DNA from: Podarcis tiliguerta
Lineage: Eukaryota
Direction: 5' to 3' (one strand)
Assembly (NCBI GenBank): GCA_965153285.1
Contig: OZ229122.1
Length of the DNA stretch: 64,000 nucleotides
Shown: piece by piece, positions 52,649 to 64,000 of the stretch
How the letters are laid out: every line of letters starts with the position of its first letter
How positions within the stretch are numbered: the first letter of the stretch is position 1
Notes under the pieces: model-generated
Seen by the model: the letters and a program-made list of their open reading frames with translations, nothing else
Database searches by the model: none
What the model was told of the DNA's origin: nothing
Position numbers and translations under genes: made by a program

Positions 52649-54179
52649 TCATGCTAGACCTATATTTTGACTTAAATGTAAGGCAACATTGTATGGTTAT
52701 CAGTTTATATTTAACTGGTTTTTTTTAACAGCACACACACAAACTTACCAAGCTGCACTCCAATCCAGAAGTCCAAAACTTCCATGGGTTCATGCATACT
52801 TTTTAATATCGGGGAGGGGGGAGGCGACGACGGACAGACACAAACTCTCTCCCGTTATCACTTATAACAGTGGGACCTACGGAAGCAGTTAACAATTTTT
52901 TTTTTACAATTTAAAAATGACAAATAGAGAGGAATCTTGGGGAGGGGGCTGGATACATCCTGTGGGCTGCAGGTTAGCTATTCCTGCTACACAGCATAGT
53001 GGTTTAAATAAATTAGAAGTTGCCATATATTCACAATAACAAATTGGCTTGATCAAAGATGCTAGTACTCGATATAGCTACAATTTTGCTAAAAATCCCT
53101 GTGTGTTTAGGACTGCAGCATTAACTTGGTTTATCCTCAGAATAAGTGGGAGGGTGTCCTAGCTAGCCATTAGTATTTGTTTTTTCCACTGCAGCCAATT
53201 AGTCAATGGCAGAGGTAGGACTTGAATATAGGCCTCTCACATATTAAGTCAAGTAGACATTGCATTATACAGTCTCTCTGTCCCCATTGTTTTATATTTG
53301 TTGGGCAGGCCCAATCCTGAACCATCTATCCAGAATGGAAGTGAAGAAGAGCAAATATTTGTAAACGTCATCCTCTTATTTTATTTAGAAATTAACTATG
53401 ACTTATAGTTATCAAAGCAATAAATACAGTAATAAAAAACATAATTAAAAATGAGTTTATAAGCAGGTAGCTGAAGGCTTTAGCATGAACCTAAAATGTT
53501 TATTCAAAAGTAACATCTATTAAGTTCAATAGGGTTTACTGCCAACTGTGTGTGTAGGATTATAGCCTCGACCACATGAACATGAAAAGGTCTATGCTAC
53601 ATCTAAAATGAAAATACTGGTTTTGAAATAACTTTCATATTTGCTTTAAGTGCCAATGAGTTTTCCCCCCTTCCTTTGCCAAGTTAGCCAGGCCCACTTT
53701 TACATCTAACGTCAAAATTTGGAATTGGTTCCCATTGGAGAAATCATGATTTCAAATTCAGAACTCATTGAAGCTCTCGAGTTCCCAGTGCAGATTTATC
53801 ACCTGTAAAGTCAGGGCACTGGAAGTTTTGAAAGGAGCTCGAAATGTTGTCAACAACGTCTTGTCAACCTCGTTTTGCGCGAAGGCGCGAGCACCCTCCC
53901 CCATGTAAACAATATTCATTGAAACTTTCCTGACTTTCAAAGTCGCATCCGAAGTATCTGCGAGTCCTAGGGGAAGTGCATGTTTTCACGAGCCAAAGCT
54001 GCCTCTCCTCATTCATAAGTGCATCTTGTTTTGAGCACCTTCGAATAGTCGCGCCAGCCCGCCCAGCGAACAATTGGAAGAATTTTTGAGGAAAGAAAAA
54101 TCGAGTCCTCCCTCCCTCCGTCCGAAAGAGAGAGGGAGACTCCAACCCCCAGCATCCCCCAGGACTCCATTTCCCAGCA

Positions 54180-55200
54180 TGCCCTTCACTCGCGATGGCC
54201 TTTCCCTCGCCCCGCGGGCTCGCAGTCCCGCATCCCGCTCTATCTGATTGTGAGGGAGAAGAGCGCCGTCTTCCGCAATTCTTTTGGCCCGCGGCCTCTC
54301 GCCGGGACGCCGTCCTCCCCCGTGACGCGCCTGTGAGACACTTTGGGTTTGAGTTTCTTTTCTCTTTCTCCACGCACGCACACCCTCCTTCGCGTTACCC
54401 GAGCTCTCGCGAGACTTGAGCGCCGAGGCCGGCGGGTGGAGGGAGCGGTGGGAGGAGGGAGGGGCTGGCCCTGGCGCTTGGTGGTGGCGGCCGCCATTTT
54501 GCCGCGGCGGGTCAGGTCTGGCTCGGCGGGGCCTGGTTAGGGATCAGCATCCGGGTGGGAGGGGTGGGCGACGTGCCGAGGAGCACCGGCGAAGGCCGCG
54601 CAAAGGGAGAAGTCGCGCGGGAGAGGCCTGGGGGCCGCGGATGGCGGCGGATTCTCTCCGGCCGAGGCGGCGGCGCTGGGGCTGAGGCGGCGGCAGGAGG
54701 AGGCGGGGCAGGAGGCGCCTCCCCTCCCTCCTCCCTCCTCCCCCCTCCCACCCAGGTAAGATGGCGGACCGGCCGGGGCTCTACTCCTCTCGCTCACACC
54801 CACCTCCCTGGAGGGGTGCAAGTCTCTGCTTCGAGTCGGGAGGGAAAAGTGAGGAAACAGATAAGAGCGCGCGCGTGTGCCTGGTTGCCGGTGGTCGCGC
54901 GCGCGCGCGGCCTTTTACCTCCCCCGAACCTTCCTCTCTTCCGTCGGTCATTTCCCTCCCCTACCTATAGAGGGCGCACTAATGGAGAGTGGTGGGGCGG
55001 GAAATAAGAGAAAGGAGCCAATGTGGGAGCCGCACGCGCTTACCCAGCCAACGGCCGCTCTCAATGCTGGCCTATTATTACTTCACCTATCGCCCTCCTC
55101 CCCCCCCCGTCACCTCGTTTCCTCGCGCGCCGCGAAACCGACCAACCAACGGCCGCCTACTTTTCAGCGGGTGGGGGAGGGGCGAGCGGGGATTCTCGGG
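54180..55200 (+). promoter_or_regulatory. SRCAP: SRCAP CpG-island promoter and non-coding exon 1 (donor at 54755)
   Basis: CpG island with palindrome TCTCGCGAGA (54405-54414), YY1 site CCGCCATTTT (54491-54500) and donor CAG|GTAAGA. Confidence 0.8.
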
Positions 55201-55645
55201 GGACTAGGGAGGGAGGGCGAGGGAGGGAGGGAGGGGTTTGGGGGAAACCGGGGCGGGGTCAAGGGGTCAAAGGGAAAAGGTGGGAGGGAAAGGGTGACAA
55301 AGGGGTTAAAGGGTGGGGGGGAAATCAAAGGGCATCGAACTTGTGCTGAAAAAGAAAGAAACTAGGCGTCAGAGGGGGAATCGCTTGTGATTAGGGTGCA
55401 ATGAATGAATAAATGCAGGATTGCGGGTACAAGGATTGATTTTTAGCGGGGCGCAAGGGTTCTGAGAAAGGGTGGCAAGTTCAGAGGGTATTAGGGTATC
55501 ATCTGGGACTTGAGCAGTTGCACTGCTCTAGGGTTTGGGTGGCTAGTGATAATACTTGAAAAGTTGGGAGGGGGTTGCAGTTACTTAGCACCATCAAAGT
55601 TTTGCAAGAAACCAGAGCAGAAATAAGTGAAAGGTTAATGTGGTC

Positions 55646-58600
55646 ATGGAGCCTGAGGAGGGGCAGGCTGAAGCTCAGGATGATAGGAAGGGAAAGGAGG
55701 CTGTAGTGAATGAAGAGACCACAGTGGAAGTACCTCCCAATGAGGTAGAGAGAAAGATAACTGGATTGCTTCCAGAGACAGGTGTGGGACAGGGAGAGGC
55801 TAAAGACTCAGAGGCAGAAGAGGAGGCTGAAAAAGAACATGAAGCACCAAGTACTGGAGAGTTGATGGAACCAGACCAGGATACATTTGGACCCTTAGCA
55901 GAACTGGATAGGGGGGTGGCTGAGGATGCAATGGCATTAGGAATGTCTGGGGAAGAGGCTGAGGAAATTATTGAACCAGATCTGAGAAAAGCAGAAGAGT
56001 TGGAGACAGTGATTCTTGAGGAACTTCAGCTTAAGAGTAATAGAGAGAAAGAAGAAGTTGAAGAGTCAAGAGAACCAAATCAGGAGGAAACCAGTGTTTT
56101 TGGGAGCCCAGACGAGAGGGAAGCTGAGGGGAAGACTGGAAAAGGAATGGATCAGCAGGAGACTCAGGAATTTATTCATGAGGAAGAAACACTGTTTGGA
56201 GAGGGTGAAATGGTTCTAGAAATGGGGGGAAATTGGACTGAGGAGTTGGCAGGGCCGGACCACGGGAAAGAAGAGGATTTGGTAGAAGAGGACCATGTAG
56301 ATTCTGGAGAGAGGGTTGAAAAGGGAGATGAACAGGAAAAGTTGATGGAACTGGAAGAGAGGGAAGCTGAGGCAACTGACAGGGAAGATGAGGCAGTGGG
56401 GGAGGCTGAAAAGATGCCAGAGTCGGTGGAGGTGGGAGAGAGTGACAAAGAAGGGGAATCAACAGATAATCATGGAGAAATGGAGGAGTTGTCAGGACTG
56501 GGTCAAGGGGAGATCCTAGAGGTCACTGGAAAGGAAGAGGATGTGGCACCTGCAATTGACTATGAGGAAACTGAGAAGGTGCCAGATGTAAATGAGAGAG
56601 AGCTAGAGGAAGTGACTGCAGAGGAAGATGCAATATTAGCAAGGGGTGAGGAGGAGTTGGTAGGACTAGGTCAGGGGGAAATTGAGGTGTTGACTGGAGA
56701 GGAGGAACCAGTTTTGGGTAAGAGGGAGGCGGAGATGACAGTTGGACCAGGTGAGGAAGGACTTGGTGAGGAAATTGAAAGGGAAGACAGGGCATCTGGA
56801 GTAGATCAGAGAGAGGCTGAAAGCATGATTGTGGAAGGAGATTTGGCATCATCAGAGGGTTGGGGGGTAGTTGAAGACTTGGTGAAGTCAAGCAGGGGAG
56901 AAGCAGAGGAGGTGGCACCATCAATGGATCAAGTTAAAGTCCTACAAGAAGATCTGAGGGGGTCAGAGTTGGTGATTGCTGAGGGAGAGGCAGGTGCAGC
57001 TGAGGAGAAGGCTGAGCATTTGGGGGTGGCAAGTCAGGGAGAAGTTGAGGGTAAGACTGAAAAAGAAAGTATGGCATCAACACTGGATCAGGGATCACCA
57101 AGAATAGATGAAAAGCAGGCAGAAGAGGTGGCTGCAGAGAAAGATGTGGAATCAGTAGAAGATCAAAAGCAAGTTGAGGATTTGGCTGGGATAAGTCAGG
57201 GTGAGATTGGCAGTATGGTAGCCACAGTGGAGGAAGGGGAAGATAAGAGGGAGGCAGAGGTGGCAACTTCAAAGAGAGATGTAGCATTTATTGAGGGGGA
57301 GGGTTTAGTAGTGACAAGTCAGGTAGAGACTGAGGAGGTGAGTGTCAAGGAGGATATGATACACGTGGCTCTTGATGTGGCTGAGCAAGTGATAGGAGCA
57401 GCTCAGAGGGAAACAGAAAAGATGAGTGCAGTGGGTCAGAAAGAAGGAAGGGAGGAGGCGGTGGGAGCACCAGTGAGAGTAGCTGGAGCACAAGAAGAAA
57501 CTGGAGGCCTGGAGGAAGAACTTGTGCAAAGTCAGGAGATGGGGCCTGGAGAAGAGGTGAAACTAGGAGCTAGTCAGGAGAAAGTTGGAGAGCTAGCAGA
57601 ACCAGAACAAAGGGAGACAAAAGAGCAAGTAGGACTTGATCAGGGAGAAGCCAAGCAGTTGGGTTCAACTGAGAGGGTTACTAGGGAGGAATCGCGAGAA
57701 ATAAGAGAGGCATTATTCAAGGATCAGAGTGATACTAAGGTGCTGGTGGAACCATTTCAGGGACCAGTAGTGGAGGTTACAAGTGTAGGTGAGATTGCGT
57801 TGACTGAGCAGCATCAAGGTACTATGGGAAGAAAGGTACCCTCTCAGGAGAAGACATTAGTTTGGAGCCCAGAAGTAGAAGAACAGTTGGGAGGACCAGC
57901 TCAGGAGATGGCAGGCGTGCCTTCCAGGGAGGGGATATTGAGTCAAAGGGCAAAACCAAGTGAAGAAGATACCAGAGTCACCTGGTTGGCATCTGATACG
58001 AACCTGGCCCAAGGTCAAGTGGAACCAAGCCTGAAGGTGGCTGAATTGAATAAATCAGGTTCCTCAGTGCTGTCATCACATTTGTCACAGCGCACTGCCA
58101 TAGGAAGTCAAGAGGAACGTCGCAAGTTGAAGGGGAAAATAATTTCAGGGTTGGCAGGATTACGGCAAGGGCCAATACTGGTACCACATCAAGGGACAAC
58201 ACGCTCATGTGGATTCCGTCGTGGAGTGCTGGAGCACAGGGCTCCAGGGTTGATTGTGACCAGTTTAACAGCAATGGCTCGGCAAAAGGGAATGATTAAG
58301 GAGGCTCGTACGCAACTGGGAAAGGGTGAATTAGATCAGAGGGAGACACGATCAGCTGAATTGAGGTCTCGTGCAGTTAGGGTTAAAGTAGGTGAGCCGG
58401 TGGTTATGATGGGGTACAGAATTGGACGGGAAGGGATGTCATGTTTCTCTGAGGCAGATAACAGGATAGAGAGCTTTCAGCGGGTTCCTGTGATGGAGGA
58501 GGCAGGAAAGGGATCTGATCAGACCCCAGCAGAACCACCGAGGCAGGAACAGATAGTTAAGGAGTTGGAGATACTGGCCAAGGATGTTGATGACGGAGCA

Positions 58601-59329
58601 AGGCAACATCCAGAAGGAATGTACTTGCCATGGCTTGGTAGGCCACTGACACAAGATTATTCGACAATACGACCAGGTTCTGGTTGGACTGCAAGCCTTG
58701 GGTCCGGGCATGGACTTGCTTTAGGGCCATTGCGGGCTGGAATAAAAGAACGAATAAACATGATGGTGACAGGTCAGGGAGCAGTAAAGTCAGCAGGACC
58801 AAGTCCTGAGCCACCAGTGTCTGGGATGGGAAGAAGGGTGTATGGGCTTACAAGCCAATCAGCCAACGTACACTGGCTGAAGGACGTGTTGGGATCTAAG
58901 CAGACGGTGTCTCGACTCTCTGTAACAGTTCGTGGCTCAAAAGCAGACAGTCCTGACTCTATGGCAGAGAGACGAAGTCCAGGCCTGTTAACAGGAAAGC
59001 AAGAGTTGAAAGATTGGCGGGATGGGGTAATGGGAATTGCAATTAGAAGGTACAATGCCATGAGGCGGGCAATGTGGGGCGAAGGCCCAGCTGGTTTGCA
59101 TGTGAAGGGAGTGAAGGTGGCTGAAAGTCCCATTGATACTATTCCATTGAGTTCTCTTAAGACTGGTTCCATTCTGGGGCAGGTTGAACAGAGGGCGCTG
59201 AGGCTGGCACAGCATGTGGAGGGTGAGGCTGTGTCAGGATTGGAAGTAGAAGGGCAGGGGCTGGCTGAGAGGCTGAAGCAGGATATGGAGCCAGCAGGGT
59301 CAGGCCAGGGAGGTAGAATTACAAGGTAA
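55646..59329 (+). CDS. Large Glu-rich ORF (1227 aa from ATG) in SRCAP intron 1; probable alternative giant exon ending at donor 59325
   Basis: 3.7 kb without a stop, starting at a strong Kozak gtcATGG. Degenerate G-x-x-Q-G/R-E-x-E repeats. The stop TAA lies inside the donor AAG|GTAACT. Confidence 0.7.
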   Translation: MEPEEGQAEAQDDRKGKEAVVNEETTVEVPPNEVERKITGLLPETGVGQGEAKDSEAEEEAEKEHEAPSTGELMEPDQDTFGPLAELDRGVAEDAMALGMSGEEAEEIIEPDLRKAEELETVILEELQLKSNREKEEVEESREPNQEETSVFGSPDEREAEGKTGKGMDQQETQEFIHEEETLFGEGEMVLEMGGNWTEELAGPDHGKEEDLVEEDHVDSGERVEKGDEQEKLMELEEREAEATDREDEAVGEAEKMPESVEVGESDKEGESTDNHGEMEELSGLGQGEILEVTGKEEDVAPAIDYEETEKVPDVNERELEEVTAEEDAILARGEEELVGLGQGEIEVLTGEEEPVLGKREAEMTVGPGEEGLGEEIEREDRASGVDQREAESMIVEGDLASSEGWGVVEDLVKSSRGEAEEVAPSMDQVKVLQEDLRGSELVIAEGEAGAAEEKAEHLGVASQGEVEGKTEKESMASTLDQGSPRIDEKQAEEVAAEKDVESVEDQKQVEDLAGISQGEIGSMVATVEEGEDKREAEVATSKRDVAFIEGEGLVVTSQVETEEVSVKEDMIHVALDVAEQVIGAAQRETEKMSAVGQKEGREEAVGAPVRVAGAQEETGGLEEELVQSQEMGPGEEVKLGASQEKVGELAEPEQRETKEQVGLDQGEAKQLGSTERVTREESREIREALFKDQSDTKVLVEPFQGPVVEVTSVGEIALTEQHQGTMGRKVPSQEKTLVWSPEVEEQLGGPAQEMAGVPSREGILSQRAKPSEEDTRVTWLASDTNLAQGQVEPSLKVAELNKSGSSVLSSHLSQRTAIGSQEERRKLKGKIISGLAGLRQGPILVPHQGTTRSCGFRRGVLEHRAPGLIVTSLTAMARQKGMIKEARTQLGKGELDQRETRSAELRSRAVRVKVGEPVVMMGYRIGREGMSCFSEADNRIESFQRVPVMEEAGKGSDQTPAEPPRQEQIVKELEILAKDVDDGARQHPEGMYLPWLGRPLTQDYSTIRPGSGWTASLGSGHGLALGPLRAGIKERINMMVTGQGAVKSAGPSPEPPVSGMGRRVYGLTSQSANVHWLKDVLGSKQTVSRLSVTVRGSKADSPDSMAERRSPGLLTGKQELKDWRDGVMGIAIRRYNAMRRAMWGEGPAGLHVKGVKVAESPIDTIPLSSLKTGSILGQVEQRALRLAQHVEGEAVSGLEVEGQGLAERLKQDMEPAGSGQGGRITR

Positions 59330-59782
59330 CTGGGTTAAGTGTGGAGTGAGAGGGAAGGAACAAAAGGTTTGGGAGATAGTGGGTTATTTATGAGCTAGGG
59401 ACAAAATTGAGCTATAGAAGCAGAGAGTTAATAGGACGCTATAGCAATAGAGTTGAGTTGCAAAATCTCAGCTTGCAGGATGAATGGGTTGTAGATCTCT
59501 CTCAAGAATGAAGCCAAGAAGGGAAGTAAACTTCCCTGGGATAATGATATGAGGGTGACGTGCAGAATATTGACGCTTCTGAAGCAAAGGTGGGTACATA
59601 GGAAGCAAAATAAAAATAATTTATTATTTATACTCCACTCATCTAGCCGGGTCGCCCCAGATACTGAGAAGATTTTGGGCTTTGGATACCTAGGCATGGG
59701 AGTGAGTGAAAAGAACACTGCTAGACAACTCAGAATCCGTAAAGTGGATGGGAAAGTGAGATAATTCTAGTGGTTCACCAAA

Positions 59783-59917
59783 CCGCACCCCAAACAGGTT
59801 CCTGCCTCTTTTCATAGGCTTGAATTTGGTAGCTGGTGCGTACAGTAAAACTCTCCACCGCAACCCGTGGGCCGGCTATTCCCATGCTGTCTGCGTAACA
59901 ATAAAAGAGAGACAGGG
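59783..59917 (+). ncRNA. SNORA30: H/ACA snoRNA, SNORA30/SNORA37 family
   Basis: First hairpin closed by CGCACC/GGTGCG and containing ATTTGGTAGCTGGTGC, as recalled for human SNORA30. Box H ACAGTA at 59842-59847; second hairpin CTCTC...GAGAG; ACA at 59912-59914. SRCAP is the known SNORA30 host. Confidence 0.8.
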
Positions 59918-60061
59918 TTTGATCTACCCTTTGGCAGAGTCGTTCAGGGTCCCAAGAGCAAGTTTGAATGATCCTTACCTAAAGGAATAGGTTGCTGTGC
60001 ATCTACCACACGCGCACACACACAAAATGTTCTCTGGACTAACGGTTCCATCTTTCTTCAG

Positions 60062-60135
60062 GTGTAGTATTCCCCAGGAAAGCGAAACCCTGGAAGTTCA
60101 GCCTGACAAGCAAGAGGAGTTCGCAGCTCGCGCAG
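60062..60135 (+). other. SRCAP: SRCAP exon 2 (74 nt, conventionally 5' UTR)
   Basis: Acceptor TCTTTCTTCAG and donor CAG|GTACAG. Confidence 0.7.
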
Positions 60136-61395
60136 GTACAGGTGAAACTGAATACCATTGGGGAATTGGCAACAGGGTTTTAAGCAGGAACATCAAGCAA
60201 ATCTATATCTTTGGCTGTTTTTCTGAGCTCAGTGTTGGATTTATTTTCTTTTCAAAATGCTTTTTCTGTCACCAACATCTATATTGATGGGCCAGAATTT
60301 ATTATGTACTGGAATCTGGCTTGGCCACAACTAAACTTAATTTGCTTCTTGAGATATGATGGAGGGATATAAAAAGCAGCTCAAAGGAATGAAATAAAAT
60401 TTACAGTATCTGTTCATAGCTCCCCTGGAAATTTTTGGAAAGTCTAGGCATTTAGTACTAAACAGTAGAATATGTATCCAGTGGAGGAAGATAGGGGAAT
60501 CCTCTACTTGTAGGCAGGGTTTACATCTTTTGTGTCTAAATATTAAAGTTTTAAATGCAAACTTTGAGAGAAAACATTTTTTCACATTACCCAAACGTTT
60601 ATTCTGTAACAGAAAATGTTTACTTGTGTGTACAAACTTAGCAACGGAGATTTTCTAATGCTGTTGTGTTTTTGATGGCTACTGTGTTGGATATATTAAT
60701 TTTCTACTGGGTTCTGCCACCAGATCTCTTGTATATCGTAAATTGGGAGAGGCTAACTCCCAGTTTGGGGGGGCCTGATCCGGCTCCCAAGCAAATTTTT
60801 CTGGGGCTCCCCTGATTTTGGCAACAGCAACCAAAAAGGAAAAAAGAACCCCTCCTCCCTTCACTGTAATCATTAATCAAATCATATTTATACTCACATC
60901 TTCTTTTTTGAGAAAAACCTAGTGAGAAATGAGATTTGATCAGCTGGGAACTGTTTGGTTTACATTTATGCTCTTTATTTAATAGCTGCTTTTAAGGTGC
61001 ATTACTTTCCTTCTTTAATTTTTAGTGCTTTACTTTGTGTTAAAGGAAAGTAAAATTGTAGGCAGAAGGCATGCTAATGTCATTTTGACGTTTAATTTCA
61101 CTTCCTCTGAAAATCTTCCTTTAGCTTGTTCTTGAGTGGGTGTCTTTCAGTTCTTTTCAGTCTGGCTCTGATCACAATGCGACTGATTCCTCTTCATGAA
61201 TCTCTAGATAATTCTGAGACAGGCAGTCCCGAGCGCAGGCTGGGCTGCCAAGGAACCCAGGAGCTGGACGGCTCGTCCCAGTGGCTGGCTGACCAGAATG
61301 AGGCCGGTTCCGAGCATGCACTGGAGCAGGAAGCCAGCACTGCAACCGCAAACGAAGCTGTTGGGACGAGAGGCAAAGAGCAAGAGAGAACTAAA

Positions 61396-64000
61396 ATGCA
61401 GAGCAGTCCTCCCCAACAGCAACATGCGCTGCAACCACAGGTAGAGTTGGAGGTGAGGGGAATCCCAGTGTAAGGCCCTGTGTTTTGAGGCCGCTTACTG
61501 GATTACAGTTTTTCAAAGCACTGTAGTTCATTAGGGGTCTTCAGAATGAATTTTGACTGCTTTAGTGAAGTATGTGGATGATCATTGTACTACAAAGAGC
61601 ATCTGTGAGAGTCAGAACAAGGGATGCTCTTCTCTGATGCTCTACCTAGATAAGCTCCCCAGCGCTGTTGGGTTCCTTTAAGGCCACTATAATAATTTTC
61701 TACCCTCGTTTGTCTCCTCTTGTTCATCTCAGACTGCATCGGACAGAATGACAGGCAGTAACCCAGTGTCACCAGCCTCCTCGGGCTCACCTGCCTCAAC
61801 TGGCAGCCTCTCACCACCACATCTCACCCACGACTCCTCGCTGGACAGTCACCCAGGTTTTGATGTTCCCAAGACACAGAACAGAGCCCTTGTGTCGCCC
61901 GGGATGTACACCTCCCCGGACCCTGCAAGCATGTGGGACAAGACACACGCGGAGATTGCTGAGCAGGCCAAGCATGTAAGCCACACATGGTCCAGGGATC
62001 ATTTGGCCCCTTCTGCCCTCTTGAGTTGGGCATGAACATACACAATCTAAGTTAACATTCTGTTTAGTTTGTCCTTCCAAGCTGCAGTTCACAAGGATAC
62101 AGTGTTTTGGGCTAACTGACTTGGGGGATGTATTCCAGGAGGCAGAGATTGAAAACCGCATCGCAGAAATGAAGAAGGAAGGGTTCTGGTCCATGAAACG
62201 GCTGTCGAAGGTGCCTGAGCCAGTCCGGCCCAAAGTACACTGGGATTATCTTTGCGAGGAGATGCAGTGGCTCTCTGCTGACTTTGCCCAAGAGCGCCGA
62301 TGGAAGAGGGGTGTTGCGAGGAAGGTGAGTTTGATGGAAACAGCTGCCAATCTCCAAACATTTAACCCATCTCTTTCAGTCAGTTTTCACTCATGCATTC
62401 CAATCTCTGGGTTTAAGGGCATTTCATAATCGTGCAATTTTGTAACACCTCAGGCTTGTGGCTTGTGCTGTTGCAGAAAAGCAATATAATATGTGTGTCC
62501 CTAGGGTTTCCATCCACTTTAGTGAAGTGGAGCTAGCTCTTCCTTACGACCCAGATTTAGGAAGGACTGTTTAGAGCCGTGGAAATCTGTGAAGACTTGT
62601 GATTCTTAACATGATCCTTCTCTCCTTTGTTGCTTGCAGGTGGTGCGCATGGTGATCAGACACCACGAAGAGCAGAAGCAAAAAGAAGAACGAGCCAAAC
62701 GGGAGGAGCAGGCCAAGCTGCGCCGTATTGCCTCGTCCATCGCCAAAGAAGTCAAGCAATTCTGGAGCAACGTAGAGAAGGTACGTGAGGAACCTGTCTG
62801 GCATCATAAAAGCAGCATGCAGGCCTTGCTCCTGAATACAGGAGCCACACCTTGAGCCAGGTGTCTGGAGCTGGTTGCCTCTACTCTGCCTAATCAGAAA
62901 TACTGTGGATTCATCCATAGAAGGGTTGAGTGAATCTCTTGCCTTCATAGTTTGTTGGTGGAATTTCTCTAATTAATATATGCGTATAGGTAAACGTAGG
63001 GGTGTGTGTGTGTGTGTACATATATATGGATATATATACATAAACACATATACACACATGCATACACACACATATGAATGACTTCATTTAGACAAAATAC
63101 GTAAAGTATAACAAACCAGAATTTCAAACACATAAAGCATGCAGTTAGTTGGAGGTTTTGTTTGTTATGTATTTATGTCCACTCTCACTCATTCTTCACT
63201 TCTGCATTCATATTAAAAAGGCGAGGCAAATTATGCTTTTGTCTATTCTCCTACAGCAGTGAAATGAATTGTTCTGCTCTGTCTCAAACATCAGTTGCTT
63301 TTATTACTTGTAATTGGAGTTACTGTTCCAAATACAGTGGTACCTCGGGTTAAGTACTTAATTCGTTCCGGAGGTCTGCTCTTAACCTGAAACTGTTCTT
63401 AACCTGAAGCACCACTTTAGCTAATGGGGCCTCCTGCTGACGTGCCACTGGAGCCCGATTTCTGTTCTTATCCTGAAGCAAAGTTCTTAACCTGAAGCAC
63501 TATTTCCGGGCTAGCGGAGTCTGTAACCTGAAGCGTATGTAACCTGAAGCATATGTAACCTGAGGTACCACTGTAACTAAATTGGGGTTTCTTGCTTTTA
63601 CATGAGTACCAAAGTGCTTTTTAATAGCTTTGAAAAATTTGCATGGTTAAGGTTGCAGAGAAAAGAGCAGCACTGTGTGCACAGGACTACTGAAGACTTT
63701 GAGAAGATAGTAGCTCTTTGCCCATGTTGCCTTTAACTCAAGAGCAAGTTCTAGCACAGCACATTCTGCAGGAATGAACTTGACAAACTCTTTTTTCCTC
63801 AGGTTGTGCAATTCAAGCAACAATCACGTCTGGAGGAGAAACGGAAAAAAGCCTTGGACCTGCAGCTAGACTTCATAGTGGGCCAGACAGAGAAATACTC
63901 AGACCTACTGACCCAGAGCCTCAATGAGACCTTTCCAGTTCCCAGCAAGACCAGTGGCTCCCATGCGGGCTCTACTGCCTCTAGCCCACCACACCCCAGT
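61396..64000 (+). CDS. SRCAP: Helicase SRCAP (H2A.Z-depositing remodeller), N-terminal part including the HSA domain; truncated by the window
   Basis: Coding exons 61396-61440 (MQSSPPQQQHALQPQ; exon starts at 61161), 61733-61975, 62139-62324 (PEPVRPKVHWDYLCEEMQWLSADFAQERRWK), 62640-62780 and 63803 to beyond 64000 (VVQFKQQSRLEEKRKKALDLQLDFIVGQTEKYS). All phase 0. Confidence 0.95.
63335..63573. mobile_element. Tc1/mariner (Tigger/pogo-like) MITE
   Basis: TA|CAGTGGTACCTCGGGTTA...TAACCTGAGGTACCACTG|TA, with internal TAACCTGAAGC sub-repeats. Confidence 0.85.

Follow-up and report, generated by a model that had tools for sequence, protein, structure and literature searches.

The window analysed here, 64,000 nucleotides (nt) of one strand of contig OZ229122.1 from the lizard Podarcis tiliguerta (assembly GCA_965153285.1), covers the 5' end of SRCAP and, between the promoter region and exon 2 of this gene, an open reading frame (ORF) of 1227 codons on the same strand. 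This ORF is a genuine protein-coding gene and neither a compositional nor a repeat artefact; it is already present in RefSeq and UniProt in the form of unnamed LOC models, yet it is uncharacterised. We consider it likely that it represents a squamate-restricted gene with one coding exon, located between the SRCAP promoter region and exon 2, which gives a stand-alone protein ending at its own TAA. Sense transcription covers the long exon that carries it, which spans at least 55324-59589; RNA of a related lacertid shows this exon joined to SRCAP exons 2 and 3 by splicing from a donor 260 nt past the stop. Coordinates are collected in Table 1.

A conserved reading frame in squamates

The frame is open from 55640 to 59329 on the + strand. 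Its first ATG at 55646 and the TAA at 59327-59329 give 1227 amino acids (aa), and the ORF list, which starts at the GTG 55640 upstream of this ATG, counts 1229 aa. That this ORF is real, as proposed in a preliminary description of the same DNA, is borne out by shuffles, by the stops in other frames and by codon periodicity. The longest open run in 300 mononucleotide shuffles was 195 codons versus 1227 aa in the ORF, the five alternative frames carry 28-93 stops each across the same stretch, and periodicity is strong, with G at 50% of first and C at 6% of third codon positions. The strand is rich in purines (GC skew up to +0.57); T still makes up 18%, so that composition by itself cannot account for the missing stops. 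A chance ORF is ruled out by the shuffles and frame statistics. A tandem-repeat origin of the open frame is likewise ruled out, since Tandem Repeats Finder (TRF) reported no tandem repeat within the ORF, self-BLASTP of the 1227-aa protein gave no matches and just two direct repeats, both weak and of 27-30 nt, were found. Elsewhere in the 64-kb window no paralogue was detected by tblastn, in which the ORF matched itself only, and an Rfam scan of the entire window returned no family.

The main ATG stands in the context GTC ATG G. Four upstream ATGs (55401, 55405, 55413 and 55638) occur in the leader of the ORF exon, the last of which lies 8 nt 5' of the main ATG, out of frame, and opens a 22-codon ORF overlapping the main start.

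RNA from a related lacertid (organism A, run X1), which differs from the window by ~2% mismatches, allowed a direct comparison of the frame. Within the ORF, all indels relative to this species are multiples of three (+48, from record offsets, +12, -12, +6, -12 and -15); in the 260 nt past the stop, the two indels are +2 and -3.

A word-indexed protein search with residues 700-1227 as query matched ten full-length proteins of 1000-1363 aa. Identities were 98% in Podarcis lilfordi ("Hypothetical predicted protein"), 95% in P. muralis (LOC114583697), 91% in Zootoca vivipara (LOC132593046), 53% in both Candoia aspera (LOC134495752) and Anolis sagrei ("AKAP12-like"), 49-50% in Notechis, Pseudonaja and Micrurus (uncharacterised), 49% in Phrynocephalus forsythii (hypothetical protein) and 47% in Thamnophis elegans ("titin homolog"). 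Full-length models of the orphan protein exist in at least nine species, and orthologues belong to the families Lacertidae, Boidae, Elapidae, Colubridae, Dactyloidae and Agamidae. In the alignment, the start MEPEEG is common to all, the acidic N-terminal two thirds align poorly with many indels, and over the C-terminal 413 aa lacertids are 51-62% identical to snakes or iguanians, with about 100 invariant residues.

An exhaustive phmmer search with the C-terminal region against 1.84 billion representatives yielded six matches, all of them members of the orphan-protein family. A profile search raised this to 13, of which the 12 with an organism name are squamates and the other, a run contig (P0018), belongs to the same family; its gains over phmmer were three family members, namely two named snake models and this contig. 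Neither search, within HMMER sensitivity and among annotated proteins, detected a homologue outside squamates. The lineage specificity suggested in the preliminary description is in line with these matches and, given an intact ORF and expression in several species, the orphan gene appears to be restricted to this clade.

Lacertids, elapids, a colubrid and a fragment (P0011) share the aligned position of the stop, with all lacertid database models ending in ...GRITR. A Micrurus protein present in UniRef only (P0008), which is presumably transcriptome-derived, likewise terminates at the ORF stop. The option of a stand-alone protein ending at the TAA, which had been listed earlier as the outcome of the unspliced frame, is hence matched by the lacertid, elapid and colubrid models and by the Micrurus protein. 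Compared with lacertids and elapids, the protein terminates 3 residues sooner in Candoia and about 16 sooner in Anolis, which argues against a conserved fusion through the site at the ORF end.

The protein (~133 kDa) consists of an acidic N-terminal and a basic C-terminal half which are unlike each other. As far as residue 700, D+E amount to 25-39% per 100 aa, a degenerate [LV]xG[LIV][GS]QGE, in about eight copies, is the only element to recur in the acidic part, and this region evolves rapidly with in-frame indels. Invariant motifs of the C-terminal region include KGKIIxGLAGLRQG, APGLIVT, MGYRIGRExMSC, WLGRP, IKxRI and LKDWRDGVMGxAIxRYNAMR; deep conservation together with frames intact across families argues for purifying selection on this half. 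No family matched in NCBIfam or in Pfam, the latter searched with the full-length protein (E <= 1) and with the C-terminal 413 aa (E <= 0.1), and no match was found in the PDB, by sequence or by profile, or in the ESM Atlas with the whole protein or the C-terminus. An AlphaFold2 model of the C-terminal 413 aa, the sole part of the protein folded, had a mean predicted local distance difference test (pLDDT) score of 35 from a shallow alignment of 11 sequences and predicts no confident fold; its few helices include a longest one over ELKDWRDGVMGIAIKRYNAMRRAMWGEG. Judging from composition and locus, we can only guess at a role as a disordered nuclear or chromatin-associated protein whose acidic half might bind basic partners, e.g., histones.

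RefSeq lists orthologues under names such as "A-kinase anchor protein 12-like", "titin homolog", "retinitis pigmentosa 1-like 1", "myb-like protein X" and "enolase-phosphatase E1-like". The orthologues resemble these families in their Glu-rich composition only and contain none of their Pfam domains; such names are artefacts of this composition, produced by automatic annotation. One of these models, the "myb-like protein X" of Thamnophis sirtalis (P0019), begins with about 410 residues of the orphan N-terminus and continues into a stretch matching human SRCAP residues about 381-505 (E = 3e-24), omitting both the conserved C-terminus of the orphan and the HSA region of SRCAP. Although probably chimeric as a predicted protein, the model shows that a colubrid, too, has the ORF 5' of SRCAP, on one strand and one contig with it. 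None of the papers found mentions the LOC identifiers of the orthologues, and no description of a coupling between the orphan gene and SRCAP was found, the ten top matches for SRCAP, upstream ORFs (uORFs) or bicistronic loci being general and without SRCAP.

Predicted isoforms of Pseudonaja textilis and Notechis scutatus (P0013-P0017) are distinguished by internal deletions of the acidic region, in frame and exitron-like in appearance. In two elapid isoforms, the sequence departs from the conserved C-terminal region at ...SLRA and terminates as ...LRADV-stop, which implies splicing out of the ORF body in snakes.

Transcripts from the 5' end of SRCAP

RNA from four runs was compared over 55301-61300; raw stranded reads came from two runs, sampled at 12%. 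In X1, contig record 1 (13,059 nt, mean depth 74) is colinear with the window from 55324 through the ORF and across 59325 up to 59589, so that, in the long 5' exon, the complete ORF is preceded by a leader of at least 322 nt and followed by 260 nt past its stop. Two joints of the type GT..AG follow, 59589>60062 into the 74-nt exon 2 and 60135>61208 into exon 3 (raw positions 59587>60060 and 60133>61206, corrected by a cut of +2), and the contig extends a further 8.6 kb past the compared stretch, presumably as the SRCAP body. These spliced joints establish that run X1 is RNA. For the intron 60136-61207, depth was 0 in the all-intron bins 60301-61100, and the intron 59590-60061 was represented by a separate contig with a depth of 5.7 versus 74 for the main contig; the ORF exon in X1 is therefore not mere unspliced background. 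The raw stranded reads on the ORF are all oriented like those on SRCAP exons, and the joint 60135>61208 is backed by three raw reads (X24).

The exon structure differs in part from the one in the preliminary description (a slash marks the cut in what follows). The 74-nt exon 2 was correctly placed there, as judged from the contig joints. Exon 3 had been assumed to begin at 61161, whereas the X1 contig and the three raw reads use the acceptor CTCTAG/ATAATT at 61208; the in-frame SRCAP ATG at 61177 and the TGA at 61169-61171 preceding it, which had been taken as exonic, are consequently both intronic. The SRCAP start is ATG 61396 (MQSSPP...), in exon 3. At the ORF end, the sequence reads TTACAAG/GTAACTGG, and the proposed donor does have the GT and the phase 2 attributed to an exon ending at 59325; its use is not reflected in RNA, where the contig remains colinear and splices at AGCAAAG/GTGGGTAC (59589/59590), 260 nt past the TAA, with seven in-frame stops between 59327 and 59589. 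Neither of the predicted junctions, 59325 to 61161 or 59325 to 60062, nor any other joint from 59325 was present in the four runs, whose coverage is limited so that a rare isoform could escape.

Frames across the junctions were worked out exon by exon. For the sites assumed earlier, the arithmetic was correct for all three outcomes, i.e., a giant SRCAP upon skipping of exon 2, a separate protein upon its inclusion and a 1227-aa protein from the unspliced frame. With the acceptor at 61208, the proposed exon-2 switch is inverted: a hypothetical transcript from donor 59325 which skips exon 2 reads AGA and then TAA, and one which includes exon 2 is in frame with SRCAP through the junction codons AGG and GAT. 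The giant SRCAP by exon skipping and the exon-2 switch accordingly lack support, as neither 59325 nor 61161 appears in RNA and the skip with 61208 ends at AGA-TAA. The idea of a bicistronic or NMD-sensitive message (NMD, nonsense-mediated decay) finds partial support in that an RNA contig joins the ORF exon to SRCAP exons 2 and 3; the donor used for this is 59589 and not 59325.

The 5' untranslated region (UTR) of SRCAP itself (60062-60135 plus 61208-61395) is free of stops over 87 codons in the SRCAP frame, which 4% of shuffles match. This open frame extends back by 71 codons through the putative exon 1, with no ATG, and the ORF-side donors 59325 and 59589 are both in a phase matching it. In exon 3, an out-of-frame ATG at 61298 opens a 48-codon ORF (61298-61444) which overlaps the SRCAP start at 61396 and might act as a regulatory uORF in the canonical SRCAP mRNA.

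Farther downstream, the HSA domain confirms the identity of the host gene as SRCAP. Upstream, the promoter region contains a putative non-coding SRCAP exon 1 with the donor CCCACCCAG/GTAAGATGG at 54755/54756. It is flanked by GCCGCCATTTTG (54486-54497) and AAGATGGCGGA (54760-54770), which we take to resemble YY1-type promoter motifs. A C-rich (CCCTCC)n tract at 54721-54745 lies near the 3' end of the putative exon, and a G-rich (GGGAGG)n tract follows 466 nt on at 55212-55236, the two forming an inverted pair that is 25 nt long and 76% complementary. The RNA contig starts at 55324, just past the G-rich tract, and this tract may explain why the assembly stops there.

The AATAAA at 59609 forms the start of a short dispersed repeat (59609-59651, AATAAAAATAATTTATTATTTATACTCC...). 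This repeat collects very many reads and contigs from elsewhere, with a depth of about 1195 in X5, and shows heterogeneous loose ends on both sides.

Table 1. Features of the orphan gene and of the 5' end of SRCAP in the window
Feature	Position	Strand	Basis or remark
GC-rich, CpG-island-like promoter region	54000..55300	.	GC 0.57-0.70; upstream of ORF
Long 5' exon seen in RNA	55324..59589	+	X1 contig; donor AAG/GTGGGT at 59589/59590
Squamate-restricted protein, coding sequence incl. TAA stop	55646..59329	+	ORF list, statistics, orthologues, in-frame indels
Acidic N-terminal region, aa 1-760	55646..57925	+	pI 4.1, net charge about -152
Conserved basic C-terminal region, aa 815-1227	58088..59326	+	pI 10.05, net charge +17
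Donor-like AG/GTAACT proposed earlier	59324..59331	+	overlaps TAA stop; use not seen in RNA
AATAAA	59609..59614	+	20 nt past donor 59589; candidate signal for short monocistronic mRNA
SRCAP 5' UTR exon 2, 74 nt	60062..60135	+	RNA contig joints
SRCAP exon 3	61208..61440	+	X1 contig and three raw reads (X24); donor CAG/GTAGAG at 61440/61441
SRCAP HSA-domain exons	62121..62780	+	Pfam PF07529, E = 1.7e-14 and 8.8e-4

One transcription unit or two genes

The favoured explanation is that one transcription unit could give rise to two mutually exclusive messages. Splicing of the short exon 1 to exon 2 would produce the message from which SRCAP is translated, and use of the long 5' exon would produce one from which the 1227-aa upstream cistron is translated, ribosomes failing to get as far as the SRCAP ATG, so that use of the long exon in a transcript would preclude a normal SRCAP message from that transcript. 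Reinitiation at the SRCAP ATG seems unlikely, with 522 nt and several AUGs downstream. A stop codon well upstream of an exon junction generally triggers NMD; with its stop 260 nt 5' of such a junction, the long form is predicted to be NMD-sensitive, unless polyadenylation near the AATAAA at 59609 makes a short form. The working mRNA would then be either this short form, ending near 59609, or a long form that is tolerated.

Several points weigh against this picture. It would be surprising for a gene maintained for well over 100 million years to depend on an NMD-prone message. The RNA comes entirely from species other than P. tiliguerta, and in organism B the contigs over the ORF have a depth of 3-9, barely more than one intronic contig (3.8), with a mere handful of raw ORF reads. 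The ORF and SRCAP exons 2 and 3 stand on one contig; de Bruijn contigs may chain isoforms. Given this possible chaining and a mean depth taken over 13 kb, ORF transcripts need not all continue into SRCAP. Translation of the ORF is predicted, as are the transcription start and the poly(A) site of its transcript. Finally, the acidic half appears only weakly constrained: the first 1.2 kb differ from the related lacertid by 30 substitutions, 21 non-synonymous and 9 synonymous (pN/pS ~0.6).

A possible alternative, to which we assign clearly less weight, is an independent nested gene in SRCAP intron 1, with a putative promoter of its own at 54.8-55.3 kb and a putative separate poly(A) site shortly past 59609, whose mRNA is monocistronic and intronless and whose joint to SRCAP is a minor read-through (conjoined) by-product. 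Such a message would escape NMD and suit long-term conservation better, the ORF is a separate LOC gene in RefSeq for several species, an AATAAA follows the donor at 20 nt, and a contig of organism B (59351-59613) crosses the donor 59589 unspliced. However, 59609 is also the edge of the dispersed repeat, which alone breaks contigs, and the RNA runs showed no poly(A)-ending reads. Moreover, the only assembled full path runs from the ORF into SRCAP exons.

The giant SRCAP of the preliminary description can be reformulated with the corrected sites, as a minor isoform joining 59325, exon 2 and 61208 that would add about 1310 residues in frame. The site at 59325 is a fair donor (AAG/GTAACT) in phase 2, and, in the SRCAP frame, exon 2 and the beginning of exon 3 contain no stop, the 4% of shuffles mentioned above applying here too. 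The terminal ...R-stop shared by lacertids, most snakes and P0011, and absent from Micrurus (...ISM), could equally mirror an AG/GTAA donor. Against this stand the colinear contig and the absence of joints from 59325, the earlier ends of the Candoia and Anolis proteins, the termination of the Micrurus protein at the stop and the result of the exhaustive scan, which contains no protein with the C-terminal region longer than 1363 aa, although SRCAP clusters could hide fusions. We regard this isoform as very unlikely. No more credit is due to a purely regulatory role, in which the long exon would be a non-coding leader diverting transcription into an NMD target and the ORF would have no functional protein. 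The predicted NMD geometry, the weak constraint on the N-terminal half and the absence of both a recognisable domain and a confident fold would fit such a leader, but a frame of 1000-1363 codons with conserved start and stop and about 100 residues invariant across families requires selection at the protein level, and every indel in the ORF is in frame.

A more far-reaching version of the favoured two-message model, improbable in our estimation, is a dual-coding squamate SRCAP locus. Here, the choice of the promoter-proximal exon would toggle between the H2A.Z remodeller and a partner with a charge of about -150, e.g., a histone-binding one, and a rare in-frame fusion via 59325 and exon 2 would be made in addition. 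If real, this fusion would explain why the SRCAP 5' UTR exons are open in the SRCAP frame.

Related systems and implications

Vertebrate loci with an upstream cistron or a bicistronic message include SNURF-SNRPN and GDF1-CERS1, which resemble the present one in that a conserved ORF precedes an unrelated major ORF, apparently in one spliced transcription unit. In contrast to their upstream cistrons of tens to a few hundred residues, the one described here has 1227 aa, stands on an alternative first exon and hence not in every transcript, and is found in squamates only, and translation of both cistrons from a joint mRNA is putative. Conjoined or nested gene pairs share with this locus a same-strand gene in the 5' intron of a host whose next exon is joined to the last exon of the nested gene. 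They differ in that lacertids and snakes alike appear to have kept the linkage to SRCAP, and in that an own promoter and poly(A) site are putative here. With exon ORF15 of RPGR, the orphan gene has in common a long purine-rich exon with an acidic low-complexity region tolerating in-frame changes in length, as in the predicted snake isoforms, which differ by in-frame internal deletions. It has neither sequence similarity to ORF15 nor tandem repeats, and its protein adds a conserved basic C-terminal region.

For the annotation of squamate genomes, these results mean that names like "titin homolog" or "AKAP12-like" are artefactual and that the T. sirtalis "myb-like protein X" is a chimera of the ORF and SRCAP. 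More generally, a large uncharacterised protein family emerges which occurs in lizards and snakes only and was kept throughout lacertid, iguanian and snake history, and whose orphan gene is linked, physically and in transcription, with the 5' end of SRCAP, an essential gene for a chromatin remodeller. In the event of competition between the canonical exon 1 and the long 5' exon, one promoter region would choose between two unrelated proteins, and the orphan ORF would, to our knowledge, be among the largest upstream cistrons of vertebrates.

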